Shown: positions 6,432 through 61,570 of the stretch, piece by piece
Position numbering within the stretch: position 1 is the stretch's first letter
How the letters are laid out: every line of letters begins with the position of its first letter
Source: Eukaryota sp. TZLM1-RC
Taxonomy: Eukaryota > Protista > Metamonada: BaSk clade
NCBI GenBank assembly: GCA_040285825.1
Contig: JAUPSS010000003.1
Span: forward strand, 2,728,001 to 2,792,000
Reading direction: 5' to 3'
DNA length: 64,000 nucleotides
The notes under the pieces: model-generated
The model's database searches: none
What the model was told of the DNA's origin: nothing
The model's input: the letters and a program-made list of their open reading frames with translations, nothing else
Translations under genes and position numbers: made by a program

Positions 6432-8102
6432 ATGGCAGTCATCACTCCCTATTCAGGAGAAGATGATCCACGAACCCAGGGGTGGACAAAGAACCGTTAC
6501 TTCATCCTTTTATGTGGTTTTGTGCTACAAGTGAACATCGGTATGCGTTGATCAGCTCTTGTTAATCTTTGGCACACTATATGGCTTAAGTGTTTTCTCT
6601 ACACCTATCAGAGAGCTTTATCCTCATTGGCGCGGAAATGTGTCGTTTGCCTATAGTGTTGGAGTAGCTGGTATGGGATTTCTTTGTCCCTTTGCTGGTC
6701 AACTTTTAGATAAGAAGGGACCTCGATGGACTGGTCGGCTAAGTTCTATTTTATTCTTGTTGGCTCATGTTTTATCAGGTCTATTCGTTAAGTTCGATGT
6801 AAAACATGCATTTTGGCTCTCCTACGGTATCATCGGTGGTCCAGCATTCGCTCTTGGGTACGATGATTTTCTTCATCTCATTTCAGCTATTGTACACCCG
6901 TAGCTCCCGTGATACAGTGGTTTCCTGAACTCAGAGGCTTTGCTGGGGGATTAGTCCTGGCAGGTTTTGGTATGGGATCTATGAAGATGGGTATACTAGT
7001 TGTACGTTTAATTGAGTTATTCGGCCCTGGACTTGCACTCATCACACTAGGAATTTATGGGGGATGCTTCATTTTCAGTACATCCTATTTTATATGTAAG
7101 CCACCTCCAGGATACTACCCTAAAAATGCCTCCACCAAACTTCAACAATCTGTAGCCTCAGAAAACAGCATTAATCTTGGCAAAGCTCTGAAATCTTTCA
7201 CTTATTGGAAAGTGTGGTTCACTATTCTTGGAACTACTTTTGCTGGTGTATCTCTTATCTCCTTGTCATCTCCTATTTTAGAGGATGTATTCTCATTAAC
7301 TGAAGTTCAGGCAGGGAGATATCTCGCCATTTTCAGTACCGTTGATATGTCTAGTCGTTTTTTCTATTCGATCCTTAGTGATGTTTTTGCCCGCTACAAT
7401 TTGTGCAGAAAATGGTTGTACATTTGGCTTTTAACTAGTCAGTTCATTGTTTGTCTATTTATGACATCAATTATGACCAACCAACTCCTGGGTCTTTACA
7501 TTGTTAGTGCCTCTGTGCTCGTCAGCGGTCTGTCTGGTGGTCTCGGCTCTCTTCCTGGTTTTCTCTCTGAAATGTTTGGTTCAAAGTCTCTTTCTTCATT
7601 GTTTGGAATGACCTTAGCAGCCTGGGCTACCAGTGGATTGGTAGGTTCTCAGATACTTGCTGCAGTTCAAGCCCATGGCCAAGATACAGGAGTGGAAGAC
7701 CATTTGGTGTATATCCCATTTTTCAAGTACATTCCAATTCTTATAGCCATTTGTTTGGTTGCTGCTTTAACGTTACGTCCTTATAAGTTTGCAAAAGAAA
7801 CTGTTCTTCCCACTAGTGCAGATAATGAGGATGGTTCTGAAAATCAAGAAGAGGAATCAAAAAAAGCACCTGATGATGAATTAGTTGAGAACGGACATGC
7901 GATTGAGATGGTGGAAGTAGTGAATTTACCTGCTAATGACAATGTTGACAGTGATTCACAAGATGTGGAAGGTGATGATTCCACGGAGAATGATAATGTT
8001 GAAACAATTGAACAGATTGATCAAGATCAATCAATTCCAACTGATCACTCTGAGGAAGATTCTTGTGCTGTGTCTGACATTGACATTGTTGTTGAGGATT
8101 AA
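6432..8102 (+). CDS. MFS transporter, OFA/OxlT (oxalate:formate antiporter)-like, with acidic C-terminal tail; 2 introns
   Basis: Exons 6432-6540, 6572-6857, 6887-8102 join to 536 aa (…LQVNIGTLYGLSVF…GQLLDKKGPR…LGYCTPVAPVIQWFPELRG…). Introns 6541-6571 (GT-TG) and 6858-6886 (GT-AG). Confidence 0.85.
6541..6571 (+). other. 31-nt intron with non-canonical GT-TG boundaries
   Basis: GTATGC donor, and TTAAT branch-like motif with A at 6565 followed by exactly 6 nt (TCTTTG). Removal restores frame and TM1. Retention reaches TGA, and the internal AG at 6554-6555 is out of frame. Confidence 0.75.
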
Positions 8103-17892: not shown

Positions 17893-19597
17893 ATGGTTGC
17901 CTCCCAGCGTTACATTTGTACTATTGATTCCGGCACCACCTCCAACCGGTGCATTCTTTTCGACACTGATGACCTCTCCATCAAAGCCATTCACCAAATT
18001 GAACATCGTCAAATCTATCGTCAACCCGGCTGGGTAGAACATGACCCTAAAGAAATCATCGCCAACGTAAAGCTCTGCATTAACCAAGCTGTCTCCCAGC
18101 TTTATTCTACCGTTCCTGCCTCAAAACCATCAGAAGAAGTCATTGCCATTGGTGTCACTAACCAAAGGGAAACACTTGTTGTTTGGGATTCATCTACTGG
18201 CGAACCTCTCTACAACGCTATTGTTTGGCTAGACACCAGAACTAAGGACTGTGTAGACCAACTGGTGACTAAGCTTGGTGGCGTAAGGGCTCTTTCGGAT
18301 CAAACGGGCCTTCCCTTATCTACTTATTTTTCTGGTGTGAAACTTCGTTGGCTACTTGACAATGTACCAGCTGTGGCTGAGGCTTCTGCGAAGAAAACAC
18401 TGTTATGGGGAACTATTGACTCTTGGATTTTATACTCCCTGAGTAGGGAAAGAGTACATGTTACGGATGTGAGTAACGCGTCGAGAACTCTTTTGTTTAA
18501 TATTAAATCATTAGAGTGGGATAAACAATTGTTTGATGCTTTGGATATTCCTTTTACCGGCTATCCAGAGGTTAAACTTTCCTGTTCTGAGAGCTATGGA
18601 ACAATGGATCAGGGACCTCTAGCTGATGTTCCTTTCTGTTCTATTCTGGGGGATCAGCAGAGTGCACTTTGTGGACAAGGAGGTGTTTCTCCGAGCTCTA
18701 CCAAAGTAACTTATGGTATGTTTATTGTATTTTAAATTTCACCGCATGAACTGGGGCTTTTTTGCTCAAGAACACCGGAAGTGTACCCATATCTAGCTCG
18801 CATGGTTTGGTTACCACTATTGGTTATCAGTTCAAGTCCAATGAAGTCATTTACTGTCTAGAAGGTTTGGTCTTGTATTAATTACCACTAACAATCAGGA
18901 AGTATAGCTGTTGCTGGCTCTGCCATTCAGTTTTGTCGGGATAATCTTTGTCTCTTTTCTGATGTATCAGAGGTTGAACCTCTAGCTCGTTCTGTTGATG
19001 AAGCCGAATGTGTATGTTCTCTGCAAGTCTTCTTCCTCACATTAGGTCTTTGTTCCGGCTTTCAGTGGTTTATTCTGTCCTGTATGTTCTCTCTTTTTCA
19101 TTCCCTTCTTACCCCAGCATTGGGATCAAACTGCCAGAGGTACCATTGTTGGGATGAGCCAATATACGACAAAAGCGCATATTGTTAGATCTGTCCTCTC
19201 TTCTGTCGCTCATCAAGTATGTGACGTTATTTACGCCATGAATGAAGACACAGCGCATGTCAAGGGATTGAAGGAGCTTTCAGATCTCAAAATTGATGGT
19301 GGAATGACTTCAAATACTCTTTTATGTGAAACACAAGCTTCCCTTCTCAACTGTCCTGTCTACGTTTCCCGTGTTGCAGCTCCCGGAGGAGAGCAAAAGT
19401 CTGAAGCTACTGCATTGGGAGCTGCACTTGCTGCTGGAGTTGGTATTGGGTTTTGGGATAGTATTGAAGAAGCAGTAGAGCATCAACAGAGACATGCAAA
19501 TGTTTTGCAATACATGCCGGTCTTGGAGGAGGAGAAGAGATTGGCTGCAATAAAGAGATGGAATAAGGCCTTGGACAAGGCTAGAGGTTGGATTTAA
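17893..19597 (+). CDS. glpK: Glycerol kinase (FGGY family); 4 introns
   Basis: Exons 17893-18715, 18748-18864, 18899-19011, 19046-19081, 19118-19597 join to 522 aa with IDSGTTS, GWVEHDP, GVTNQRET, TDVSNASRT, GDQQSAL, TYGTGAFLL, LEGSIAVAGS, FVPAFSGL and DGG. Introns 18716-18747 (GT-AT), and 18865-18898, 19012-19045, 19082-19117 (GT-AG). Confidence 0.95.
18716..18747 (+). other. 32-nt intron with non-canonical GT-AT boundaries
   Basis: GTATGT donor, and TTCAC branch-like motif with A at 18741 followed by exactly 6 nt (CCGCAT). Removal yields the conserved TYG|TGAF. Retention stops at 18733-18735, and the next AGs (18770, 18781) are out of frame. Confidence 0.8.
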
Positions 19598-30758: not shown

Positions 30759-33700
30759 ATGCCATCTGCAAGGACCACTGATTACAAGGAATTCGTTAAT
30801 GAGCTTGAAAACGGAGTGTCTTCATTGGGATGGCTGTACAACATTCAGCAATATTCAATAACAGATCCTGAACTAGGTGTTCAACGCTCTGCCATCTCTT
30901 GTTTTTTCGTCTCTGACACTGGCTCCAACTTCAAAGTTAACATTCCTTTCCAACCCTACTTTTATATTGAAGTCAACTCAGATTCTCAACATCATCCTTC
31001 TGCTTCTGTCCTTGCTGATGTAGAACACCTCCTCCGCCGTCGTCTAGATAACTTTGCCCATATTGAACAAGTGATCAAGGAAGATCTCACCAAAGCCAAC
31101 CACTTAATAGACAGAGGCGCTACCTTCTTAAAAGTCTCCTTTCACAATACACTGGAGCATAACACAGCTGTTAGAGAAGTCCAAAAACTTTTAAAAATAG
31201 ATTCCAATTCTAAATTAGGGGGGACAACCCGAAACATTATTGCTATCAGAGAATTTGACGTTTCTCTTACACAAAGAGCTACCATTGATCTTAATCTCCG
31301 CGTTGGTTACTGGTATAAAGTATTCACAGAACTCGGCCATCCAAGCGTTGAGTTGCAAAGTGATTTGGTTGAACGTGCACAATTGAGAGTGTTGGCGTAT
31401 GATATTGAAACAACAAAAGCCCCGCTCAAGTTTCCAGACGCTAATGTTGACGTGATAATGATGATTTCTTATATGATTGATGGTCACGGGTACTTAATTA
31501 CTAATAGAGAAGTTGTTTCTGAAGACATTTCTGATTTTGATTTTAATCCAATGCCGGAATATCAGGGGAATTTTAAAGTTTTTAATGAATTGAATGAGAA
31601 GTTATTAATTGAAAGGTTTATTGACCACATAAAAGAAGAAGATCCTCATGTTATTGTCACCTATAATGGTGATTTTTTTGATTTTCCTTTTGTTGACAAG
31701 AGAGCAGCTCACCATGGGATCAGTCTTGAAAATTTAACAGGTTTTTCAAACACTGGGACTGAAACCTCCAAACAGTACACGGCGAGGTCTATTCTTCATT
31801 TAGATTGTTTTTACTGGGTTAAAAGGGACTCTTATTTACCTCAGGGTTCTCATGGTTTAAAAGCAGTTACCAAAGCTAAGTTGGGCTTTGATCCTTATGA
31901 AATTGATCCAGAATTGATGGTTCCATATGCTAAAGAAAAACCCCAGTATCTGGCCTCTTATTCGGTATCAGATGCTCTCTGTACCTATTATCTTTATTTC
32001 AAGTATATTCATGGATTTATCTTTTCTCTTTGTAACATCGTTCCTTATTCCCCTGATGAGGTACTACGGAAAGGTAGTGGGGCGCTCTGTGAAGCGCTGC
32101 TTATGGCTAGAGCCTTTAATGATAACATTATAGCCCCTGACAAGCAATCGGATTTGGGATTAAAATATGGGGATGATGGGTTCATTATCGATACGGAAAC
32201 CTATGTTGGGGCTAGGGTTGAGGCTCTTACAAGTGGAGTGTTTAGGAAGGATATTCCAATCAAATTTGATTGTAATCCAGATGCTTTTGATGAGTTGATT
32301 GATAAGTTAGATGGTGATTTGCGGTTTGCACTGGAAAAGGAAGGTGGAATTCAGTTGTCCGATGTTGTCAACTATGAAGAAATTAGGGATCAAATAAGAC
32401 AAAAACTTGAAAATTTAAAAAATTCGCCATCCAGAACCGAGTGCCCTTTAATTTACCACTTGGATGTTGGTGCAATGTACCCTAATATCATTCTTACTAA
32501 TAGACTACAACCTTGCTCAGTGGTTTCAGAAAGGGATTGTTTGGGTTGCGGGTTTAATGAACCTGGTGCAAAGTGTAAAAGAAAAATGCAGTGGGTGTGG
32601 CGAGGGCAAATGTTTCCCTTGAAAAAGGGAGACTTTGTTCAAATTAAGAACCAACTATTGTCAGAAGATCCTGAATTTAATTCCAAAACAGATGCTGAAA
32701 AAGCTAGCTTGTACAGAAAAAGACTGTCATTAAAGTCAAGGAAAACCCATACTGCCATTCACAAGGTTGTGGAGGAGGTTCGTGACGTCACCATTTGCCA
32801 AAAAGAAAATCCCTTTTATGTCAATACGGTGCGAATGTTTAGAGATCGAAGATATGAATATAAGGCCAAGCAGAAACAATGGAAGGCTAAACTAAGTCAA
32901 TGCCAGAGTCCTTTGGAAATTGATCATGCAAAGGGAATGATTGTCATTTATGACTCTCTTCAATTAGCTCACAAATGTATTCTCAACTCTTTCTATGGTT
33001 ATGTTATGAGGTCAGGGTCAAGGTGGCATTCCATAGAGATGGCAGGGGTGGTAACGAATACTGGTGTGGAGATTATTACACAAGCAAGAAAGTTGGTTGA
33101 ACGAATAGGAGTTCCCTTAGAGTTAGATACAGATGGTATCTGGTGTATGCTGCCATCCTCTTTTCCTGAAGACCATAACTTTCAATTAACCAATGGTAAA
33201 TCCTACACAATATCTTACCCTTGTGTCATGTTGAATGCTGATGTCGACGCCACATTTACTAATCCTCAATACCACCATGAAGTCCTCGCTGAAGATCAAA
33301 AGCCCATGTTTGATAAGAAAGGTCGGCCCAAATATGAGTTAAAGCCCGAATGCTCAATCTTTTTCGAAGTTGATGGTCCTTATCGAGCAATGATTCTGCC
33401 AGCTAGTACTGAAGAAGGAAGGTTATTGAAGAAACGCTATGCCGTGTTCAATGATGATGGATCTCTCGCTGAGTTGAAGGGGTTTGAGATTAAAAGAAGA
33501 GGTGAATTACAATTAATAAAGCTTTTCCAACAAGAAGTTTTCAAAGTTTTCTTGGAAGGAAATACTTTGGATGAATGCTACAAAGCCGTCGGTTCAGTAG
33601 CAAACAAGTGGCTAACTGTGCTTCATTCAAAAGGAGAAATGTTACAAGATGAAGAGGTTGTAGATCTTTTATCTGAAAGTAAAAATATGTCAAAAAATCT

Positions 33701-36700
33701 CTCTGATTATGGAGATCAGAAAAGTGTTGCTATAACTACCGCCAAGAAACTCGCAGAGTGGTTGGGCAAGAGCATAACTGAAGATTCCTCTTTAGTTTGT
33801 AAGTTTTTCATTTCAAAATATCCAGCGGGGTTGGCTGTGAATGAAAGAGCTGTGCCTGTAAATATTTTCCACACCAGCACGGAAGTACAAAAAGAGTATT
33901 TAAGCAGGTGGTGTGGGGTTTTGGATTCCTACGAAATCAAGAGTTTAATTGACTGGGATTACTATCTGGACCGGTTTGAAACCACGGTTCGGAAGATCAT
34001 AACGATACCTGCTGCTTTACAGAAGATAAGCAACCCCTGTCCTTTAGTCAATCATCCTAGTTGGTTGCAAAAGAATTTAAAAGAAGAGAAGCAATCAAAA
34101 AATCAATTAAATTTGATTGATTTGTTTGCTGCTGGCAGAAAAAGAAATGCTGATCAGGAAGAAGAGCTCAAACGATCAAATATTGAATCATTTGACGAGT
34201 CAGTACCCGCTGCGGAATCCATCAACGATGAAGAGGTTATCGATCTTGAAGATGGTGATAATCAATCCTCAAACAAATCCAATCCAACCAAACTTAGTCA
34301 AATGAGTCTTTTTGGGCAAACAATGAAAAAGGTGCTGGTTTTTCCGCGAAATTCTTCTGAGGTTCCTGACTGGATCAAAAACATGAAGAAGTCTTGGGAG
34401 GTCAAGATAGAAAAACGAAGAGAGAGGAGGAATTTGTTCAAGAAGGCAAATTTTTCCTTCCCTGCTGGATGTGTTCATTCCAGGAAGCAGTTACTAAAAT
34501 TGGAGAGGGAGTCGACGTCATCAATGACCTCTATTCTCGGAGGGTCAAGTTCATCCAAAATTTCGTCAAATTCTACAGTAAGATCTTCTAGTCAACGTTT
34601 TGGATCAATCGAAGAAAGATTGGCTTCTGATACATGGAATATCCTTTCCTTAATCCCACTTGACAAATTCGGAAACTTCTCAGCCTGGGTTACAATTAAA
34701 GGTTCCTTAGTTTCAGTTAATATCACATTACCAAGAATTTTTTACATCCAATCTGGGTCTTCTGACTTCCCTCAAGGTCTTCCAGAATCTGTCGAGATTA
34801 AGAAGGTTTCCAAATCACCCCCAAGGGGAGATACTGGCCAGTCTTTTATGTTTGAAGTTGGAATGCCTGAGGAGCTTTTCCAAGAAAGAAGGGAAAAGGT
34901 GACTGGAATCAAGTATGCAAAAGATGTTTATGGAATTTTTGAAATTGACGTTCCGTTAGATTTTAGGGCAATTGTGAGGCTTGGGGCAAAATGCAGGGTC
35001 AACAATAACGTCAGCAGGTCATTAATCAGAGGACTTCGGTTGACTAATGATGGGTTTGCTTTAGGTGATTTAATTAAGGTGACTGGGGATCCCACCACAC
35101 CATTAGCACTTGAAAATTTGAGCATTCTTTATTGTACACTCGTCACTGCTGAGAAGAGATCAGTAGCTGCTGTGTTTTCGAGAAGATTTAAAAAATTACA
35201 TATTGTTTTTGCCAATGCAACTCTGAAAAGTGGTATAGCCGGAAATTTGACAGTGGATGACGTTATTGCGTGTAATCAATCATTTTCTGATTGGAATGTT
35301 TCGATTACAAACGCAAGATCCCATGCCGAAATTTTCGCAATCTTTGAAAAATTCATTCTCTCAGAAATTTCCTACAATTCTGGAACCAATTTTACCTTTC
35401 TTGTCAAACAAGGTGACGAATTAAGCTCAAAATGGAATGGTTCTACTTATTTTCCAAATATTACCCTCTCAAATTCCCCAAAAGATGTCAAGTCATTAAA
35501 TAATTCAGATTCCTTTACTTGGATGCCTAATGGGCTGCGAATGGTGATAGATCAACATAGTCAAGTAGATTCCCGACTGACATCAATGATTGATTACTCA
35601 CTGGGGGTCAACATTCCTTTATCAAATCTTTCAAATGATGTTGTTCTTCAATCATCTGATGTTTTCCTTGCTCGACTGCTGAATGACGATAACCATTTGC
35701 TTTGGACAAGTGATTCGTCAGTGGTAACATCCACAAGCTCAATTTTTAAAATTTTGAACCCCAATTCTGACCGTGTTCCTGTACAAAGTGGGGTTTTCAG
35801 GACAACAACAGTAGATATAAGACTATATTTCTTCTTTGCCAATGCCTTAATGACTCAGAGTGTGACGAATTCCAGTAATTCATTATTAGAAAACAATGAT
35901 TTACAATTACAACAATCGCCTTGTTATAGTCAGTTGACGAAAATCGTTAAATTTTTAAATTTTTGCAGTAATAGAGCTCAATCCAATTTAATTGAAAGCA
36001 CAATTTGTAATGAAATTTTAAAGAATTTCGGTCGTTATATTTCTTCAAATCGATCTCTTCTATACGATCCTGAGCTCTTCTCGATCTGTGAAAGGATCAG
36101 TGCCTTGTCCCTCCAAAATTTTTGCACTTTCATCAAAGAAACCAGAGCCACTGTATTATTAGCTTCAACTGACAGCATCAAAATAAACACAATGAAAGAT
36201 TCTCGTCAATCTGCCCAACATTACGTTGAATCTCTAACTGAAGCATTGGCAAAGAATAACGAATTTGCCAATATTGAACTCAAAGCCAAGCAGTATCTTT
36301 CACCATTATTGCTCATTGATGCCACCAGTTTCATCGGCATCATTCAATCAGATTCGATTACCCATGACGGTCGACCTACCGGTTACTTACATTTGCTTAA
36401 TGATTCAAGGTTTGCAGAAGTGGCTGATACCGTCACTAAATTACTGGGTTATTACCTTACGGTGTCGCAAAAACTTTTAAATTATGTGGAAGATTATTCA
36501 GTCAATGGAACAATGCCTCCTTTTCCATTTGATCCCACCATGCTTTTGTCATTTGTGCAGCCTTTTGAAGGTATTTCTGAGGATCACAAGCTTTCTGTCG
36601 GTGCCCTGCGTGGTCTTTTTCATGGTAGTTTTGCTGACAATTATGATTTTCGAAAGGTAGCAGGTTTGGTGGCCAGGAAATTTTTCAGGAAAAGTAAGAA

Positions 36701-37226
36701 ACAAGAAGTAGACCCTTGTTTGGGTTTTGTTTCAATCATATGTACTTTATTGGAACATGATCCAGCCATTTCCCCTATTATTTCTTCATTTAAAGATTCT
36801 TTATTGACTGAAATATATAAGTTCGTTCCAGAATTTGAGTTTACAATGGACTACCCATCACTTTTGATTTCAAATCTTTTGTGTACTACCTGTAATATGT
36901 CTACATCCTTGGATTTGTGTAGAGAACCTTGGAATTGTAAAGATTGTGGTGCCCCGCTGAATGACGGCCATATTGAGTCTTTTATGGTGAACACCCTCAA
37001 TTCAGTAATCACAGCCTATCAAAAGCAAGATCTCGTTTGTTCACATTGCAAACTTGGTTCTTCGAGTTTGATAAATTCCCTTTGCAGTAATTGTCAAGGC
37101 ACTCTCAAGCTTTCAGTTACAGTTGATGATGTGAAGCACTTGGTCAAGCCATATAGGTATATTTTACAAGCAAAGGATGGTCAAAGTTTCCCTGCTCTAG
37201 AGGAAGTGTTGCAACTTTTTCCTTGA
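30759..37226 (+). CDS. POLE: DNA polymerase epsilon catalytic subunit
   Basis: 2155 aa. Exonuclease motifs AYDIET and YNGDFFD; WVKRDSYLPQGS; polymerase motifs HLDVGAMYPNII, KCILNSFYGY and ELDTDG; CysX motif (CLGC…C…C); C-terminal Cys clusters. Intronless. Confidence 0.98.
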   Translation: MPSARTTDYKEFVNELENGVSSLGWLYNIQQYSITDPELGVQRSAISCFFVSDTGSNFKVNIPFQPYFYIEVNSDSQHHPSASVLADVEHLLRRRLDNFAHIEQVIKEDLTKANHLIDRGATFLKVSFHNTLEHNTAVREVQKLLKIDSNSKLGGTTRNIIAIREFDVSLTQRATIDLNLRVGYWYKVFTELGHPSVELQSDLVERAQLRVLAYDIETTKAPLKFPDANVDVIMMISYMIDGHGYLITNREVVSEDISDFDFNPMPEYQGNFKVFNELNEKLLIERFIDHIKEEDPHVIVTYNGDFFDFPFVDKRAAHHGISLENLTGFSNTGTETSKQYTARSILHLDCFYWVKRDSYLPQGSHGLKAVTKAKLGFDPYEIDPELMVPYAKEKPQYLASYSVSDALCTYYLYFKYIHGFIFSLCNIVPYSPDEVLRKGSGALCEALLMARAFNDNIIAPDKQSDLGLKYGDDGFIIDTETYVGARVEALTSGVFRKDIPIKFDCNPDAFDELIDKLDGDLRFALEKEGGIQLSDVVNYEEIRDQIRQKLENLKNSPSRTECPLIYHLDVGAMYPNIILTNRLQPCSVVSERDCLGCGFNEPGAKCKRKMQWVWRGQMFPLKKGDFVQIKNQLLSEDPEFNSKTDAEKASLYRKRLSLKSRKTHTAIHKVVEEVRDVTICQKENPFYVNTVRMFRDRRYEYKAKQKQWKAKLSQCQSPLEIDHAKGMIVIYDSLQLAHKCILNSFYGYVMRSGSRWHSIEMAGVVTNTGVEIITQARKLVERIGVPLELDTDGIWCMLPSSFPEDHNFQLTNGKSYTISYPCVMLNADVDATFTNPQYHHEVLAEDQKPMFDKKGRPKYELKPECSIFFEVDGPYRAMILPASTEEGRLLKKRYAVFNDDGSLAELKGFEIKRRGELQLIKLFQQEVFKVFLEGNTLDECYKAVGSVANKWLTVLHSKGEMLQDEEVVDLLSESKNMSKNLSDYGDQKSVAITTAKKLAEWLGKSITEDSSLVCKFFISKYPAGLAVNERAVPVNIFHTSTEVQKEYLSRWCGVLDSYEIKSLIDWDYYLDRFETTVRKIITIPAALQKISNPCPLVNHPSWLQKNLKEEKQSKNQLNLIDLFAAGRKRNADQEEELKRSNIESFDESVPAAESINDEEVIDLEDGDNQSSNKSNPTKLSQMSLFGQTMKKVLVFPRNSSEVPDWIKNMKKSWEVKIEKRRERRNLFKKANFSFPAGCVHSRKQLLKLERESTSSMTSILGGSSSSKISSNSTVRSSSQRFGSIEERLASDTWNILSLIPLDKFGNFSAWVTIKGSLVSVNITLPRIFYIQSGSSDFPQGLPESVEIKKVSKSPPRGDTGQSFMFEVGMPEELFQERREKVTGIKYAKDVYGIFEIDVPLDFRAIVRLGAKCRVNNNVSRSLIRGLRLTNDGFALGDLIKVTGDPTTPLALENLSILYCTLVTAEKRSVAAVFSRRFKKLHIVFANATLKSGIAGNLTVDDVIACNQSFSDWNVSITNARSHAEIFAIFEKFILSEISYNSGTNFTFLVKQGDELSSKWNGSTYFPNITLSNSPKDVKSLNNSDSFTWMPNGLRMVIDQHSQVDSRLTSMIDYSLGVNIPLSNLSNDVVLQSSDVFLARLLNDDNHLLWTSDSSVVTSTSSIFKILNPNSDRVPVQSGVFRTTTVDIRLYFFFANALMTQSVTNSSNSLLENNDLQLQQSPCYSQLTKIVKFLNFCSNRAQSNLIESTICNEILKNFGRYISSNRSLLYDPELFSICERISALSLQNFCTFIKETRATVLLASTDSIKINTMKDSRQSAQHYVESLTEALAKNNEFANIELKAKQYLSPLLLIDATSFIGIIQSDSITHDGRPTGYLHLLNDSRFAEVADTVTKLLGYYLTVSQKLLNYVEDYSVNGTMPPFPFDPTMLLSFVQPFEGISEDHKLSVGALRGLFHGSFADNYDFRKVAGLVARKFFRKSKKQEVDPCLGFVSIICTLLEHDPAISPIISSFKDSLLTEIYKFVPEFEFTMDYPSLLISNLLCTTCNMSTSLDLCREPWNCKDCGAPLNDGHIESFMVNTLNSVITAYQKQDLVCSHCKLGSSSLINSLCSNCQGTLKLSVTVDDVKHLVKPYRYILQAKDGQSFPALEEVLQLFP

Positions 37227-37451: not shown

Positions 37452-37525
37452 GCTCTCTTAGCTCAGTTGGTTAGAGAGTCGTGCTAGTAACGCGAAGGTC
37501 ACAGGTTCGATCCCTGTAGTGACCA
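37452..37525 (+). tRNA. Aberrant tRNA: AGT (Thr) anticodon on a tRNA-Ile-like body with acceptor-stem mismatches (possible pseudogene)
   Basis: 74-nt cloverleaf with anticodon at 37486-37488, intact A box (TAGCTCAGTTGG) and B box (GGTTCGATCC), and T4 downstream. Mismatches C2:C71, T5:T68 and G10:A25. Confidence 0.7.
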
Positions 37526-43000: not shown

Positions 43001-46000
43001 TTTTTTTTTAAATTTAATTTTATTCTAAACCTATAAATCAACATCTAAAAAATCCATCTCTCCCAAAACAAAAACACTAGATGCAACTCTCTCATAGTGA
43101 GATCCAAGAGAAAGCAAAGCATCAGAAACCATCTTCAACATCCCCTTAAAAATAGAAAACACAATTCTATTTTGCCAAAACAATCTGTGGAAATTTCTGC
43201 CAGTTCTTCTCTTTACAATCATTTCAAAATCATCCAAAAAACGTAAAGCAGTTGGTGCAAGTGAACCAAAAAGGGAAAATACAAATGGATACAAATTGTA
43301 TTTTGCATGCTGTAGACTGGCCAATTTGGACAAAGGTTCATTGTATTTTTTGAATTTAAAATTTTCAGCATTTGAAAGGGGATTATGAATTTCAGAATTA
43401 ACAAGCCTTTCATTTGAGGCATTACAAGGATCAACAGACATTACATCCAATAAAATGAAACTTCCATCTAATCCAGGTAATATAACATCACCTCTATTGT
43501 TCTTATGAAAATCATCAGTATCAAACAGATTTGACAACAAAGGTTCCAAGAAGGATTCAATTCTATGAGATTTACACATACAATATAACTGGTCTCTTAC
43601 AGCATCATGAACCTTGCTTCTAAAAGTAATAAAATGTTTACAATTTAACAAATGAGTAGTTGTAATTTCTCGAGAACATTTACAAATTAAATTATGAGGT
43701 AAATTATCAGGCCAGATAAAGGAACGAAATCTCATATTCAGAGTCCAAGCAGAATCGGATAAGAGAGTACCATAAACTTGTGGAATTGTTGTTACTAAGG
43801 CAGAAGAAGTACTGTCACACATATCTTGTAAAAGATTTGCAAAAGCGGGATTCTTTTTCTTGGCCAAGCCAAGTCTAACATCAAAATCCAAGCTTTCAAA
43901 AATCTTTGACAATTTTTGTTGAAGCTTTTTACAGCAAAACTGTAAATTAAATAGAGATCGGTTTGGAATTTCTTGAATTGATTGAGGAAAACAATTGGTC
44001 CAAATTTGTGGCGGTAATTTTTCAAGTTCACAAGATAACTCATACAAATAGGGACTACAATTGGGGACTAACAGATGAGAATCATCAGGAAATCTACGAG
44101 AAAATTCATAAATAAAATTTTGCCACCACCCAAGAATGCTGATTGACACAAAATTGAAGATTTAGTAAAACCAATACCACCCAAATTTGCTGAAGAAAAT
44201 AAATGGCTTTTCAACATTCCTGGTTCTACATCCAATAAATCAGCAAAAAATTCTGTTCTCAATGAATTGAAAGAACGACAAAAATCTAATGCTATGGAAG
44301 GAGCACAAGATCTCAAAATGTGGGTTATTCTCCCAGTGTAGCAAATTTTAAGCATGAAAAATTTAATATGCTTTTCTATATCTAAAGAAGAAATTGAATC
44401 AAGTTCAATTTTCATTTTTTCCAAAATAACTTGCAATTCATTCTGAATTTGAGGCACATTTCCTAACCAACAACCAAGGAACTTAAAAGCATCACTACTA
44501 TAATTAGTAAAAGGGACAATAGAATCGTTTATCACGAGGTCTTGAGCAGAAGAGCCAATCAGAAGACATTTGCTGGCATTAAGATGAAGCCCAATATTTT
44601 CATATGAATCGGCAATTTCTTGAGCAACCAATTCTAGTAAATCAAATGAACCAATCAAGGATATATCATCCATATAAGCAACTATTTTTATAGAAGGGTA
44701 TTTTTGCTTAATGATATTTAAAGTTTTGTGAATAGCTAAACAAAACAATAATGGGCCTAAAGGATCTCCCTGCTTCACTCCAGAAGATGATTTAAGACCA
44801 AATGAATTAAAAATTAAATCTGATTCTTTCCCATAAAAATGGTAGAAAAAAACTCGATAGCTCAGGAAAATCAGATTTAATAACTTCAAAAATTGCTTCT
44901 CGCTTTACAGAATTAAAAGCATTTTTAAAGTCGAGATTAAAAATAAAATTATTTTTCTCTGCATTAAAAAAGGTATCAGAGGCAATAGCAGCAACAGAAG
45001 CACCATCAATTGTTTTGATTCCAAATTGATGAGGATTCAAAAATGTAGAAGCTTTGTCTTTGACACGATCGAAGACAATTGATGCTAGCAAACGAGAAAG
45101 AGATTCACCAACAGCAATTGGGCGTATTCCATCAGGTTTGATTCCGTTTCCAGGCTTTACTAAAGCAATCAGACGTGCTGCGAGTAATTCAAATGGAGGA
45201 TTAATTTTCAAAACAATCAATTGTTGAAAATAGTGGGCTAGATCATCAGCAATTTCGGGAGCACTGGAACACGCTATTTTTAACAGATCAAAAGAAATTC
45301 CAGATGGGCCTGCTGCTTTCCCCTTTGGCAATTTTTGAATAGCTTTAAGAACTTCCATTGCAGTAATAGGATTTTCAATCCAAAAAGGACACACTTCAGG
45401 CTTGCTGCACTTGAAATTTTCTTGAGGATGCAACTTTTGAAGTTTTTCAAGGGTATCAGAGTTTGCATCAGCCAAAGAAGAGGAAAACAAAGACTGCTTT
45501 GCGGCACCATAACGACCACGTAAGCACAATTTACGGCAAATTTTTGATTTTACAATTTTTCTATTTCCAAATTTTTTCTTAAAACAATTTTTGTTTTTTC
45601 TAGCAAAATATTTCCAGAAGGATGAAATATTCCACTTATTATTTTTCAATTCAGAAGTAAAATTTCTCATTTCCATTGAGAAGGGGATTGTGCTGGCGGG
45701 ACTTATTTCTACTGGGATCCGGATCGGGGGTCTTACGGTATCAACGGCTTTTACAATTCGTACAAAACAGAAGTTTTCGACCATTTCGTGAATCTGCAAC
45801 ATCTTTTTTGCAAAATGGACAACAAAAATTACTGTTTTCAGAAGGGGAAGAAGAGGGAACACTAGAAGCATTTAACTGTTGATCGTCAGAAACATTATTT
45901 TCAGCACCTTTCACAACGGCAACAGCTGGAACAGAACATTTGAGAATTTGTTGAGCAGATTTTAATTCAAATTCTCTTTTTGTTTCTCAGGGCACGTTCT

Positions 46001-48378: not shown

Positions 48379-51300
48379 TCACTTCCGAATTCTAGTACTG
48401 CGTCTAGGCCTCTTGTAAGGCGTAGAGTTATTGGAGGTACTTTTACGTTGACTAGTAGTACGTTTACCAATTTTCTTGTTATTCCTACTGAACAACTTGT
48501 AAGCTTCTGAATGTTTAACTGAATGGAGAGGCTTTTCTGTTGTCTCACCGCCAAACCATTGAACAGTACAGAAACTACCTGAGTCAGAATTATTTTCTGA
48601 GAGGATTTTCTCTATAACATGTTTCTCATCATCGCCTGCTGCGACTGCCTTAAGAAATTCGATATCCTGTGGATTCTCAGCGTTATAGATTTTGCAATCT
48701 TTCTTAGCAGCCTTTAATTCGGTGCCAGTGATAAGATTTTTCAATAATAAAGTAGAGTTGGAATGACGGTCTATTACTAAAAAGGGTCTGTTCCAAGATC
48801 CATGTAATTTATTATTCTGTTTGGTTTTACGTAGGACATAGTCACCAATATTAAATACTATAGAGCGCGAATTAGTATTGTCTACTGAAATCGGAGTATT
48901 TGATAATTGATGACGCTCTGCTTCTTCCCTTTTTTCTTGCAGACGAGTATTTTTCATTTTAATGTCGTCTAATAAAGGTATATTGGAATCAAATTTTGAT
49001 AAGTTTCCTAATATGTTTGCAGGGTCCGATCTTGGACTAATCGAAGATCCGAACATTAGTTCGTAAGGTGTAAAACCTGTCTTTCTGCTTTTAGTGGAAT
49101 TTATTAATAGTTGGGATATGGGTACATAAGTAGACCAATTTCCATAATCATTAAAATCTATTGATAATTTCCTCAAGCATTGTAGAACGTCTCTATGTTT
49201 TCGCTCTACGAGTCCATTACTTTCAGAGTAGTGGGGTATTGAGTTACTCATCTCAATAGCTAATCTATTACACACTATCTTAAAAGTCTCATAGGCGAAC
49301 TCAGGACCATTATCACTATGAATTAACATAGGTATGCCAAAAATTGCGCAAACGTTCCAAATCAAAGCGTCTGCGGTCTCTAAGGCATTGAGTTCCTTCA
49401 GAGGGACTAAAATTGAATATCCAGTAAAAGAATCTACAAATACTAATAAGTATATATTACCATCATTATCAGTATTCAGAGGTCCAATTGTGTCGACATT
49501 TAATCTAGCAAAAGGACGATCTGCCCAAAGGGTACCTGTGGAAGGTGTTTTTATTCTTTTAACTGGTGCCGTTTTTTGACAAGTTGGGCATCTTTTGATG
49601 TGGTTTATGAGGTCCTTTCTCATATTAGGCCAGCAAAAGTCGCTTTTGGACAGTTGATGTAGACTGTCGTTTTTGCTGGGGTGGCCTGATTGAACCAATC
49701 CATGTATTAATAGTAGGGCCTGTTTTCTGAGGCTTTTTGGAATTAAAATTTTATATTTATTGTTTTTCCAAATTTGAGTATTTTCATCTAGAATTGCATT
49801 CTCAAATAGAGGGTCATTATTATTTTTTGCTATTTGTTGTTCAGATCTTATTTTAGAGAACCAAGAAGAAAAAATAGGTAAGTCCTGGTGTCTACTTAGG
49901 GATGAAATTGATGGGATGTCTTCGAAGTCCGAATCAGAATCATCGTCTATTGGAGGTATCTCGTAATTCGAAAGTAAAGTATCTGGTATATTTATACTAC
50001 ATATAGAAGGAGTTTTCTCGTTTTGATCTAAATCAATATTCCTTGATAGCATATCTGCCAAGTGGTTATCTTCACCTGGTTCATGGACTATATCAAAACC
50101 GAATTCAGATAGTGTCGGCAGCCATCTCTTTACAATTCTGTTTTTCTCTAGGGCTGTGGCCAGGAATGCAATATTTTTGTGATCATTGAAAATTGTTAGA
50201 TGTCTAGTCAAAAGGTAGCTTTCTAAACAACTTTCAGTTAAAATCAGAAGTATTGCGTATAATTCCTTTTGTAAGGTGGACCATTTTGATTGTGTTTCTG
50301 TAAGTAATCTACTATAGAATGACAAAGGTTGCACTTTCCTTTTATTTAGCGGGGTTCCTGCAGGGGAGTAGGGTTCAATTTCTTGCCAAATTACACCTCC
50401 TACTGCTACATCTGAAGCGTCAGTACTTATTAATACTCGCTTGCCCGGAGCTGGTAATTCAAGAGGCATGTGGTTTACTATTAAATCTTTGATTTGTTTA
50501 AGATACTCGTCATGCACATTGGTCCATTTGATAGTTCTAGGTTTTCCTTTTATTAACTCGTTAATTGGAGCTATTAATTCAGAAATTCCAGTAAGCCAAT
50601 CTCTTATGTAATTAATTGATCCAACCCAGGAGCGAACCTCTTTCAATGTTTTTGGTCTGGGTATTCTCATAAGGGCTTCTATTTTTTTCTTGCTGATGAA
50701 CCTAGTTTTGTTCTGGAAGGTACTTCCTAATATGTCAATGGGGTGTTTGGCTGTGACGAATTTGCATTTTCGTAAACCAATGTTGACCCGTCTTTTCCTG
50801 GCGCATTCGAGGACTCTTTGTAGTTGTTTGCAGAATTCATCAAATGAAGAACCGACTATTATAATGTCGTCTATGTATATGAAAACGCCGTCTATTGAAA
50901 AATTTCCATCATTACATTTTGAAATACTGCTGGGATATTCTTTAAACCGAAGCAGGCTCTTTTGAACATAATGGACCTTCCAGGTATTGAAATTGATGTT
51001 TTTTCAATACCCTTTTTTGCTACATTCATTTGCCAGAAAGCTTTTGGTAAATCAAGCGTGGCAATGTAGTCAGCTCTGCTCAAAAATTCTAATATGTCAC
51101 TAATCCGCGGTAAATTTGGTTCGACAGAAATTGTATGGGCATTAACACCGTCTGTACCACTAAAGTCGCCAGTTAATCTAGGTTAATCTAGGTCATCTGG
51201 GTAGATAACTAGGACAATAGGAGAGCTGAATCTATAATTGGATTCAACTGCATAACCCATTTCTATCAATTCGTCGAATATTTTGTTGGCTATTTCTAGA

Positions 51301-52047: not shown

Positions 52048-54925
52048 TTAGTAAGAATTGTTGAGCTGTTGGGGAGTTGTTGACTGGGTTTCCGAAATCG
52101 GCAATTGATTGATTATGTTGATTGCGTTGATTTGTTTCCGATTGGGAAAGTTTCCTGTGTTTCTGACCCTGTTGCTGAAACGGTCAATCCGTCTGTGAGA
52201 GGTCATGCTCGAACTAGGTGACACGTTCTCAGAAGGGGATGATGTTGATGATGTATCCTCTTGTGTGTTTATGTAATAAATAGGTCTATACTGACCTCTG
52301 CCTTTATGTCCTCTTAAATGGCCACCTCGGCCCCTACCTCTAAACCTAGATACACGTCTACCACGGCCACCTCGGCCTCTAACTACGCTGCCACTTCTCG
52401 CAGGCTGATCAGCCTCGCCGATCTTAAACCTTAATTCTTTTGGTACCTTGCTCCTGGTACAACGGGGGTCTTTACATTCAAAAACCGTGTGACCAATAGG
52501 GTTATATCTCTCGGTGACGTTGCTGAATGTACAAAACTTAGATCCCTCCCGTTCATGTCTTTCTGGGACATATTTGTTTTGGGGAGTTCCTTTGGATCCG
52601 CCTCCCGAGCGACGTTTAGCACCTGGACCAAATAGAATTGCTCCTCTAGAGTACGTTCTCATGGTCGAAAGGCCTAATGGAATATCTTCTTCTCTTTCAG
52701 CTTGTTTTCTCAAAAGTTCCATGGTGTGCCTATTTCCTGTTGTTTGGCACCAAGCTAAAAAGTGTCTTCTGGTGGTCGAAATCAGGTCTAACAAAGTTGT
52801 ACCTGTTGAAGGGTCCCAGAGATCTTCTCTTGTCCAATGGCTTGCCAGCTCCTGGGTAATGGCGAAATTATCTATACCCAAGAGAAAATATTCTGCAATG
52901 AGGGCGGGTGAGGGGGTTATTAAACCGCTGCTTCCCCGAATCGATGCAGATATAGAGTGATCAACCATGTAAGTGGTCATCCTCAGGACGTCTCCAAAAT
53001 CTTCGACGAACCTAGCAAATTCGTTGTCCGCATCCTTTTTGTTGTGAATGTTTCTCCAATTTATACAAGGTTTTGCTAGGGCAGAGCAAGCCTCATGATA
53101 TGAGGTAAATTGTGTCCTGCGTAACAGAAAAACCATTAGATCTGCGTCTGAGAAGTCCGGTCTCAGAAATTCTTGGCCTTGCCATCTAGAGATGAGATGA
53201 GGGTCAACCATGCTTGATAAGCCGGACGGACAAGTACTAACCATCATACTTCTAAATAAGTCATAATGATGAATAGGAGGTCCCAGACGTTTCGTCAGTT
53301 CTGGGTCGATTCTTAAAAGTGGTTGCTTCATGTCCCTATCGATTTCTTCTCTGATGTGAGATGGGAGAGATGATAGGAGCTCAGGGATAATCTGGGTTTT
53401 TCCTTCGCCAAATATCTGGGTTGCTATCAACATAGCATGAGACCAAACAGATTGACCAGGAACTTGGAAGCTTCTATCAGCTATCTTACGCCCGTATTTA
53501 TCCCATGTTTGGAACTTGAGGAGGAAGGAGACGAGAGACATCTTGTTGAGTGGGTCCTTCTCAGATAGGTGAGGAGCTTTGTATTCAGCTGACCTAGGCT
53601 AAGAATCCACATATCTCTGAAAACTACTCGATATACTCATGTCCAATATATTTCTTGAAGCTTGGAGGACTTCCAAAGGGAGAGGCTCCTCAGAAGAAAC
53701 TCTTCTACGAGGGGGTTGAGGAGGAGGTGTTTCATCTAAACTAGGTCCTCTCAACTCGACTTCGTCTTCTGATGCACTAGTGAGCATAGGTTGGGAGGAA
53801 CTTGATGGTTCCTGAACCACTCTGGTAGGTCTGTTTACTCGTTCTGTTACATCTACTGTTGAGATGTGGTCAGGAAGTACATCGATGGAACAGACTTGTA
53901 CCGGTTGCTCTTTTTCTGATATTATGGGGGCAATTACTGGAAGTTTTGGTCTCTGGTGGAGTTCTGTTGATTGATCGCCCGTGACCAAGAATCTGAACTT
54001 CTTCTTCCTTGTTGTAGATTCCCCGAATTGCTGAATAAAGTTATTTGGGCGGCTCCTAAATGTGGATACGCTTAAACGTTCCGTAAGTATACTATTTAGG
54101 GCGTCCGCGTCAAAGAAGTCGCTGACGGGTTCCAACTTACTTGGATTTATGCTGACTGCTTGTTCCATGTATTCTCTGAAACAAGTAGGAGCCCCGTCCG
54201 TTACCTCCGAGTAGTTATGGATGATCGTATCAAAGTACGAGTCCATCCATGCCGGCATTTTGGTTTTCAGGATGTCGTCGGTATCGGTTATGCTCCTTTG
54301 TTCGATGGCCAAGAACCTGATCCTTCTCCCAAACTGGTCCAAGTGAATGGCTTCCCAATCAGGTCTATCTTTGATTGGTTTTGCCAGAATCACATGGATT
54401 TCTCTGTCCATACCGGTTATCCTAGGACGGCGTTCTGCCCCGCGTCCGAAGGTTTCTCTACTCAAGGCGTCCAACGCGTTAATTAGTTCTCTTCTCTCGC
54501 TTTGGGAATATTCGTAGACTCTATGAGGGTCCCCTTTATGGCCCAGAGTCTGGAATCCCACATTTTTACCAGATTTTGTCATTTGTTTCCAAATGGGAGG
54601 GAGCTGCTCGAACAAACAGTAATCTGTAGGTTCGAGGTGGGCTTCCGCGTCCTTCATTCTCTGTTGGCTAAGCTCTTTCTCTTCATCGTCCATTTCCTTT
54701 AAAACGGACTGAAGTTCTTCGTAGTCCTTCAGAACAGACGAAGTATCTGAGCTTGACCCAACATTTTTATCTTTAGGTGAGGAGGGGGGTGGTATTCGTT
54801 CCTGAAACCTTTTCTGGTTTGTTGGACTTGGAAGAGGCGGGAGGTGGTTCTGTGCCTGGTTCCATTGGTTTCTCTTGAGGAGGGGCGGAGGGTGGTCTCG
54901 AGCCCGAATCCTCTTCTTTATTCGA
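52048..54925 (-). pseudogene. Very long gag-like ORF, interrupted
   Basis: ORFs 53599-54693 and 52048-53541 are in the same frame, separated only by a TAG at 53599-53601. Pro-rich N-terminus beyond a C-run shift near 54785. Degenerate Cys/His knuckle and RGG-rich region near the C-terminus. Confidence 0.7.
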
Positions 54926-55113
54926 CTATTCTATTCCTACTGATGTTGTATGTATGCTAAAATCATCTCTGTCGTACTGTTGCATGAAAATTTGACAAGG
55001 GTCAGTGTCCTGGCTAGGAGACACTGACATGATATCTGCTAAAGATATCCTCTGTTTGATAGCTGTAAGTTGTGTGAGTGGTATACCTATAACCTAATAC
55101 AAACAATTATTAT

Positions 55114-60869: not shown

Positions 60870-61570
60870 AAGAAAAATGTATTTGTTCGAATTCACCTCA
60901 ACTCACTTTGCGCCATGCTCTGAATTGTTCTAAATTGATAACTTATCGTTCTTCAATACATGATGCTGTTAGAGACACTGTTTTCAATATGACTCAAACT
61001 GCAAGAATATCATGTATCAAAGAGCCTCTGCTGAAGGAAACATTTTCTCTGAATAACTTTAGTTCTGATGATAGAGGTGATGTATACCGTGATTGGATTG
61101 ATAATTCTGAAGCTATTGTTGACTTTGTCTCATGTTATGTTGCAAATGATACTTTGGTTCACAGAAGAAAACTTAATCCTGTGAGTGCTCTTGATTTTAA
61201 AGCAAAAGAAAAACATAGAAAATATGATAAAGATGTTGAAGAAGCTAATGCTGATAGAAATACACAGCTGGTTTTTATTGCTTTCCCATTTTCGATAAAT
61301 GGAAGATTATCAGACGAAGCAGAAACTTTTTTGAATGATTTCCAAAAAATGGTTCAAGAAAAAACAATGAAAAGATTTGATATTTTTTTATGGCGTTCAC
61401 GGATTCAATTTGCCATTATTAATAGATTACCTCGGTTTTTCAATCGAATAAGAGAAGTTTTAGCTAGACAGCAAGCAGATCAAGATTTTGTGGAGGGAAT
61501 CGTGGTTCAATGATAGTCGTCCCATGAGTTATGAGTTAATTTAATAAAGTGTGCATGTTCAATAAATAAA
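60870..61570 (+). mobile_element. 3' fragment of non-LTR family C
   Basis: Open frame HALNC…HDAVRD…RGDVY…KHRKYDK…FVEGIVVQ*. Highly similar to 38000-38695. Confidence 0.88.

Follow-up and report, generated by a model that had tools for sequence, protein, structure and literature searches.

Few signals in eukaryotic genes are as constant as the AG dinucleotide at the 3′ end of introns, which in current structures is read through RNA contacts in the catalytic centre. In the metamonads Giardia, Spironucleus and Trichomonas, introns have a fixed spacing between branch site and 3′ end, and displacement of the branch motif kills splicing in Trichomonas (PMC6679479). The DinF gene of Giardia contains a single 30-nt type A intron with GT-AT termini, which was detected by RNA-seq and is spliced in just 1.3% of reads (PMC10711314). 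In yeast lacking Prp18, branch-proximal non-YAG sites come into use, falling mainly into the classes HAU and BG, with CAU and UAU as the best sites not ending in G; pairing between G(+1) and U(-1) was proposed by the authors, with Prp18 acting as a ruler for the minimum distance between branch and 3′ splice site (PMC10711555). In the literature searched on GT-AT and other non-canonical metamonad introns, the Giardia GT-AT intron (PMC10711314) was the only relevant case, and the introns of Skoliomonas litria considered below were undescribed.

The DNA analysed here (the window, 64,000 nucleotides) originates from S. litria TZLM1-RC, and the locus fetched from contig JAUPSS010000003.1 of assembly GCA_040285825.1 was identical to it. 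S. litria is a free-living, anaerobic metamonad of soda lakes, placed beside Fornicata (PMC11603281, PMC13087550, PMC11316075). Its glycerol kinase gene, divided into five exons (Table 1), encodes a protein with matches to the Pfam domains FGGY_N (1.4e-62) and FGGY_C (9.2e-20) and with the conserved TYGTG.F motif. The protein is 45-47% identical to bacterial and fungal glycerol kinases and retains the invariant columns of the alignment; no second glycerol kinase of S. litria appeared among the 120 best relatives. The description of the gene outside its first intron as open and conserved, given in the initial annotation, thus stands.

Two further features of the gene were noted. Introns 3 and 4, which lie on either side of the 36-nt micro-exon (19012-19117), have their first 11 bases in common (GTATGTTCTCT), and this common start could have originated by local duplication. 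Moreover, an 8-residue insertion (AAPGGEQK and variants; residues ~450-458 of the deposited protein P0151, window ~19380-19405) is common to three Skoliomonas glycerol kinases and missing from the aligned kinases of bacteria and fungi.

Table 1. Coordinates of the glycerol kinase and MFS transporter genes and of their exons, introns and splicing signals (window positions, except those marked L007)
Feature	Position	Strand	Details
Glycerol kinase gene (CDS including stop)	17893..19597	+	522 aa in five exons; GenBank entry "hypothetical protein P9112_005334" (P0151), same range in GCA_040285825.1 (contig positions 2745893-2747597)
Glycerol kinase exon 1	17893..18715	+	274 codons and first base of Gly275; P0151 residues 1-274; ends ...ACT TAT G
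Glycerol kinase intron 1	18716..18747	+	32 nt, GT..AT (GTATGT ... TTCACCGCAT)
Intron 1, 5′ splice site GTATGT	18716..18721	+	hexamer opens 8/15 catalogued introns
Intron 1, branch-like TTCAC	18738..18742	+	putative branch A 18741 = -7; six bases from A to last intron base
Intron 1, non-canonical 3′ dinucleotide AT (trinucleotide CAT)	18746..18747	+	read from sequence
Glycerol kinase exon 2	18748..18864	+	P0151 residues 276-313 and split codons; opens GA ACT GGG
Glycerol kinase intron 2	18865..18898	+	34 nt, GT..AG, CTAAC with A at -8
Glycerol kinase exon 3	18899..19011	+	P0151 residues 315-351
Glycerol kinase intron 3	19012..19045	+	34 nt, GT..AG, A at -7
Glycerol kinase exon 4 (36-nt micro-exon)	19046..19081	+	P0151 residues 352-363
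Glycerol kinase intron 4	19082..19117	+	36 nt, GT..AG, A at -7
Glycerol kinase exon 5 and stop codon	19118..19597	+	P0151 residues 364-522
MFS transporter gene (oxalate/formate antiporter-like)	6433..8102	+	exons 6433-6540, 6572-6857, 6887-8102
MFS intron 1	6541..6571	+	31 nt, GT..TG, TTAAT with A at -7
MFS intron 2	6858..6886	+	GT..AG
MFS paralogue (P0273) introns	L007:1622-1647 (AG), L007:1934-1962 (AT)		same contig, ~200 kb from window

Judged from sequence comparisons alone, the most probable account of positions 18716-18747, to which a probability of about 0.76 is assigned, is that they would be a true spliceosomal mini-intron, removed at ...CAT/GA (here and below a slash marks the junction) from the single glycerol kinase gene of S. 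litria. The sequence of this intron, read directly and checked by script, is GTATGTTTATTGTATTTTAAATTTCACCGCAT. Its excision joins a split codon, G/GA, into Gly275 and restores the reading ...K V T Y G T G A F L L, with a predicted spliced junction of ...ACTTATG/GAACTGGG... The core of the initial annotation, namely that the TYGTG.F motif is regained by cutting out an intron that starts with GTATGT and ends in CAT, was thereby reproduced at the same positions. Retention of the intron leads to a stop, as had been claimed, with TAA at 18733-18735. Neither do neighbouring AG dinucleotides offer a way out, in agreement with the earlier statement that they are out of frame: the next four end at 18770, 18781, 18796 and 18830, none of them in frame with the donor at 18715, and there is no AG within the intron itself. 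When measured against the criteria for U2-type introns, intron 1 meets those of a shared GT donor, a branch motif and restoration of the frame, while that of an AG at the 3′ end is not met. One ambiguity of the borders, not raised in the initial annotation, is that shifting both by +1 (18717-18748, TA..TG) yields an identical mRNA; preference was given to GT..AT, which retains both the GTATGT donor and the -7 position of the putative branch adenosine.

The placement of the junction was assessed against the deposited protein and against orthologues. In an exon-by-exon comparison, every exon translation proved to be an exact substring of P0151, and the GenBank model therefore already removes 18716-18747. 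The deposited model may have been made without junction reads as its basis; annotation in the genome paper followed a pipeline guided by RNA-seq, and non-canonical introns go unmentioned there (PMC11316075; pipeline details in PMC8516963). The orthologues of two sister isolates are uninterrupted open reading frames, of 1566 nt and 521 aa in TZLM3-RCL (P0001; L001:3001-4566) and of 1563 nt and 520 aa in GEM-RC1 (P0152; L003:3001-4563). Where S. litria has KVTYG/TGAFLLKNT, these orthologues read KVTYGTGAFLLMNT and KCTYGTGSFILKNI, without a gap. An alignment of eight glycerol kinases (S. litria, the two sister isolates and five others) was likewise gapless at the junction, and residues K271, T273, Y274, G275, T276, G277 and F279 were invariant throughout. 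On the evidence of the deposited protein, the intronless orthologues and the invariant alignment, the predicted junction of intron 1 is fixed to the base. The comparison of the orthologous intron in related isolates, which had been suggested as a check, could be carried through only in part: the orthologues were compared and are gapless across the junction, but both are intronless and so lack a counterpart of intron 1. Of the three isolates, S. litria alone carries the four introns of this gene, which were either gained there or lost from the other two.

A catalogue was compiled of 15 introns fixed by deposited proteins or by homology, 13 of them in the window and two at the locus of an MFS paralogue (L007). 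Enumeration of intron sets by the length of the deposited product was too permissive, giving hundreds of solutions, and exact mapping of the deposited proteins was used instead. The catalogued introns are 26-36 nt long, and all have a YTNAY motif with its A at -7 (14 introns) or -8 (one); at the 3′ end this motif is the only element they have in common, with the four following bases varying. Twelve end in AG, among which the A lies at -7 in 11 and at -8 in one. The remaining three do not end in AG (CAT in glycerol kinase, TTG in the MFS gene, TAT in its paralogue), and the A is at -7 in each of them. The probability of finding YTNAY by chance at a fixed place is 0.026 per intron, or 1.8e-5 for three of three. 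The claim that the branch-like A at 18741 occupies the same -7 position as in the canonical introns of the gene accordingly holds for introns 3 and 4 and fails for intron 2, where it is at -8. In a window-wide census of candidates by 3′ dinucleotide, AG was enriched only at a branch spacing of 7 (7 candidates, versus at most 1 at other spacings), while AT and TG ends were at background level. The census therefore cannot carry the claim of non-AG ends, the support for which rests on homology.

Left out of the catalogue were the introns of two deposited models at 43031-44673 and 53599-55030, which are without Pfam matches and lie beside retroelement genes. No solution with AG and the branch motif was found for them; the introns they imply match neither AG plus branch motif nor the usual size, and both may be mis-modelled. 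A candidate GT..CG intron at 60885-60912 was also dropped, as the downstream open reading frame had no family match. Elsewhere in the window, an intronless gene for the catalytic subunit of DNA polymerase epsilon (30759-37226, + strand; 2155 aa, with DNA_pol_B, POL2_thumb and DUF1744) is identical to the deposited protein, retroelement genes occupy 43031-45871 and 48379-50670 on the - strand (RVT_1; RT_RNaseH and integrase), and a tRNA gene at 37452-37525 (+ strand) is the only Rfam match.

The other two non-AG introns belong to a pair of MFS genes. At intron 1 of the copy in the window, the junction ...LQVNIG/TLYGLSVF... is gapless against GEM-RC1 proteins P0271 and P0272 (...LQINIGTLYGFSIF...) and against the S. 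litria paralogue P0273; the gene of the GEM-RC1 orthologue P0271 is intronless. The deposited model of P0273 in turn requires the 29-nt intron L007:1934-1962. Eight placements of this intron are equal in the mRNA, none of which ends in AG, and the one with a GTATGT donor ends in CTAACTTTAT (TAT). Comparison of the two copies revealed a swap of intron ends, with the first homologous intron position ending in TG in the window copy and in AG in the paralogue, and the second in AG in the window copy and in AT in the paralogue. As the paralogues are 62% identical and both intact, such an exchange of AG and non-AG ends cannot in general be explained by an isolated error or a recent lesion, and it fits a splicing system that would have tolerated non-AG ends over evolutionary time.

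The deposited model of the MFS gene in the window (P0270, 404 aa) covers only 6888-8099, opens with YCTPVAP and has no start codon. As it begins at 6888 without a methionine, both upstream exons and the GT..TG intron are missing from it, a truncation at the 5′ end. The GT..AT introns, unlike the GT..TG intron, are kept in the deposited models of P0151 and P0273. Read on the opposite strand, GT..AT becomes AT..AC, and introns of that class pass aligners and validators. It can be speculated that this is why the GT..AT introns survived annotation and the GT..TG intron did not.

Independent reads were sought for the decisive base. The run search returned one DNA run with the gene (X1, at a depth of 2-4) and two sister runs without it, and found no RNA run containing the glycerol kinase gene. 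Contigs of X1 cover 17968-18118, 18133-18447, 18542-18706 and 18761-19287 without a single difference from the window, leaving 18707-18760, and with it base 18747, uncovered. The last of these pieces is unspliced across introns 2-4, which identifies X1 as DNA. Metagenome scans, one with the genomic site (18747 set to N) and one with the spliced junction, gave 0 matches each. Two further fetched loci (L002 and L004) stem from the same assembly as the window and thus provide no independent evidence on base 18747.

Several other explanations have to be set against genuine splicing at ...CAT/GA. The T at 18747 could be real and intron 1 poorly or never spliced, in which case the gene, though intact in appearance, would be an allele that has recently become null or lost much of its function. 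The base is one substitution away from CAG, a retained intron would reach TAA after seven codons, RNA data for the gene are lacking, and the Giardia GT-AT intron has a low proportion of spliced reads (PMC10711314). Such an allele is nevertheless unlikely in view of a gene that is single among the 120 best relatives and retains all invariant residues, of the exact -7 branch spacing in three independent non-AG introns, and of a non-AG intron in each of the two long-diverged, intact MFS paralogues. An error of consensus or assembly, with G as the true base at 18747 and an ordinary GT-AG intron 1, would likewise involve one base only; the assembly was built from long reads, and X1, the sole other data set found, is silent on the position. 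This is quite improbable, given that 3 of the 15 catalogued introns end in something other than AG, when random errors on the last two bases are expected to be far rarer (an inference made without an assembly error rate). The other two non-AG ends are also of different kinds, one of them 200 kb distant, and the X1 contigs overlapping the gene agree with the assembly wherever they can be compared. Because of the deposited protein, the sister isolates and the additional non-AG cases with their paralogue swap, an erroneous base or a newly arisen null allele at 18747 is thus unlikely; formally, the caveat of the initial annotation that the site is one substitution from CAG remains open.

The remaining alternatives leave the base as it stands and reinterpret the intron. 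A canonical GT..AG intron can be drawn from a donor GTAACT at 18706 to an acceptor AG at 18769-18770, which removes 65 nt and is compatible in frame with the downstream exon. However, it deletes VTYGTGAFLLK, and hence seven residues invariant in the eight aligned kinases, including the TYGTG motif, lacks YTNAY at both -7 and -8, is about twice as long as any catalogued intron and conflicts with the deposited P0151. It was rejected on these grounds and can hardly be entertained. The same low standing applies to the idea that intron 1 is of the U12 type, handled by the minor spliceosome and merely unusual in its termini. In U12 introns, the consensus donor is [AG]TATCCTT and the consensus branch site, TCCTTAAC, lies roughly 10-15 nt before the end of the intron. 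Intron 1 instead has the donor GTATGTTT, the branch region TTCAC and a spacing of 6 nt, below the U12 norm, so that all three criteria are unmet and the U12 reading was rejected as scarcely credible. Fixed spacing between branch and 3′ end together with non-AG ends are indeed features of U12-type introns (discussed in PMC6679479), and GT..AT has the opposite-strand equivalence to AT..AC mentioned above, but the gene lies on the + strand, and the donor and branch features are common to the three neighbouring GT-AG introns.

The reading of 18716-18747 as a spliceosomal mini-intron, and with it the claim of the initial annotation that the spliceosome accepts AT at 18747, was supported by all indirect tests that were run (deposited protein, intronless orthologues, further non-AG introns and paralogue swap), although without RNA proof. 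A possible mechanism is that recognition of GTATGT as donor and of TTCAC as branch site would proceed as in the other 26-36-nt introns of S. litria, and that after branching at A18741 mainly geometry would set the site of exon ligation. With a spacer of six bases from branch A to cleavage site, only the phosphate after -1 may be able to reach the catalytic centre, and the last two intron bases would then be an aid to efficiency, not a requirement. In an intron ending in ...AU, the contact of A(-2) with the branch A would be kept, with U(-1) taking the place of G(-1) and facing G(+1). Actual splicing of intron 1, its efficiency, the identity of the branch point (the lariat being unmapped) and the ruler mechanism are all inferred, without RNA evidence. 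Judging from the Giardia GT-AT intron, the efficiency could be low.

Extended to the organism, the hypothesis states that S. litria would measure a constant six bases from the branch adenosine to place the site of exon ligation, with no further need for AG, and that approximately one in ten of its introns would end in HAU or BG, as in yeast without Prp18. It would owe this to a natural loss or remodelling of Prp18, Slu7 or the Prp8 surface bound by them, and would be the first wild organism with productive, routine non-AG acceptors of the U2 type. In the absence of RNA, Prp18 or Slu7 data, this wider proposal is given little better than even odds. If true, routine and productive ligation after AU or UG six bases past the branch A would amount to a natural experiment on whether geometry can replace base identity, and the state of Prp18 and Slu7 in Skoliomonas would tie the case to the yeast Prp18 work. 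There are also practical consequences, as standard gene finders miss non-AG introns and the MFS model in the window is cut short just after the GT..TG intron. The proteomes of the Skoliomonas lineage, which are used in arguments on mitochondrial reduction, may hold systematic truncations of this kind. Intron 1 of the glycerol kinase gene offers a well-anchored test case for splicing.

Among described systems, the S. litria introns resemble the fused-branch introns of Giardia, Spironucleus and Trichomonas, likewise Metamonada, in being short and uniform and in combining a GTATGT-like donor with a CTAAC-like motif at invariant spacing. The criteria of short length and invariant spacing are thus met, whereas that of an extended, AG-ended motif (ACTAACACACAG or RCTAACAARHTAG) is not. 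In those three genera the extended motif (ACTAACACACAG) carries its A at -8, while S. litria has only YTNAY with the A at -7, AT and TG ends being possible, and its spacer, which counts six bases from the branch A up to the end of the intron, is shorter by one. Introns are also present in many S. litria genes, the glycerol kinase gene alone having four, unlike in the fused-branch metamonads compared. With the DinF intron of Giardia, which has type A motifs in its first and last 15 bases, intron 1 shares a similar length and the GT..AT termini. The DinF intron, however, stands alone, and no conserved core motif depends on its removal, while in S. litria such introns occur repeatedly and split invariant residues of genes that are intact.

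The AT-AC introns of the U2 and U12 types also have natural termini other than GT-AG, and in these the first and last bases co-vary. Intron 1, in contrast, begins with G and ends with U without a compensating change at the donor, and neither its donor nor its branch site matches the U12 consensus. A close functional parallel is provided by yeast without Prp18, as the CAU, UAU and UG ends of S. litria fall into the very classes used there. In yeast, a mutant uses such sites erroneously and at a low level, and the authors count a minimum spacing of 7 nt, whereas in S. litria they would be normal, productive sites at 6 nt. Still without RNA proof, the S. litria introns can be viewed as metamonad fused-branch introns that tolerate non-AG ends; the present analysis contributes the anchored glycerol kinase intron, the exchange of ends between paralogues and the correspondence with the spectrum of Prp18-deficient yeast.
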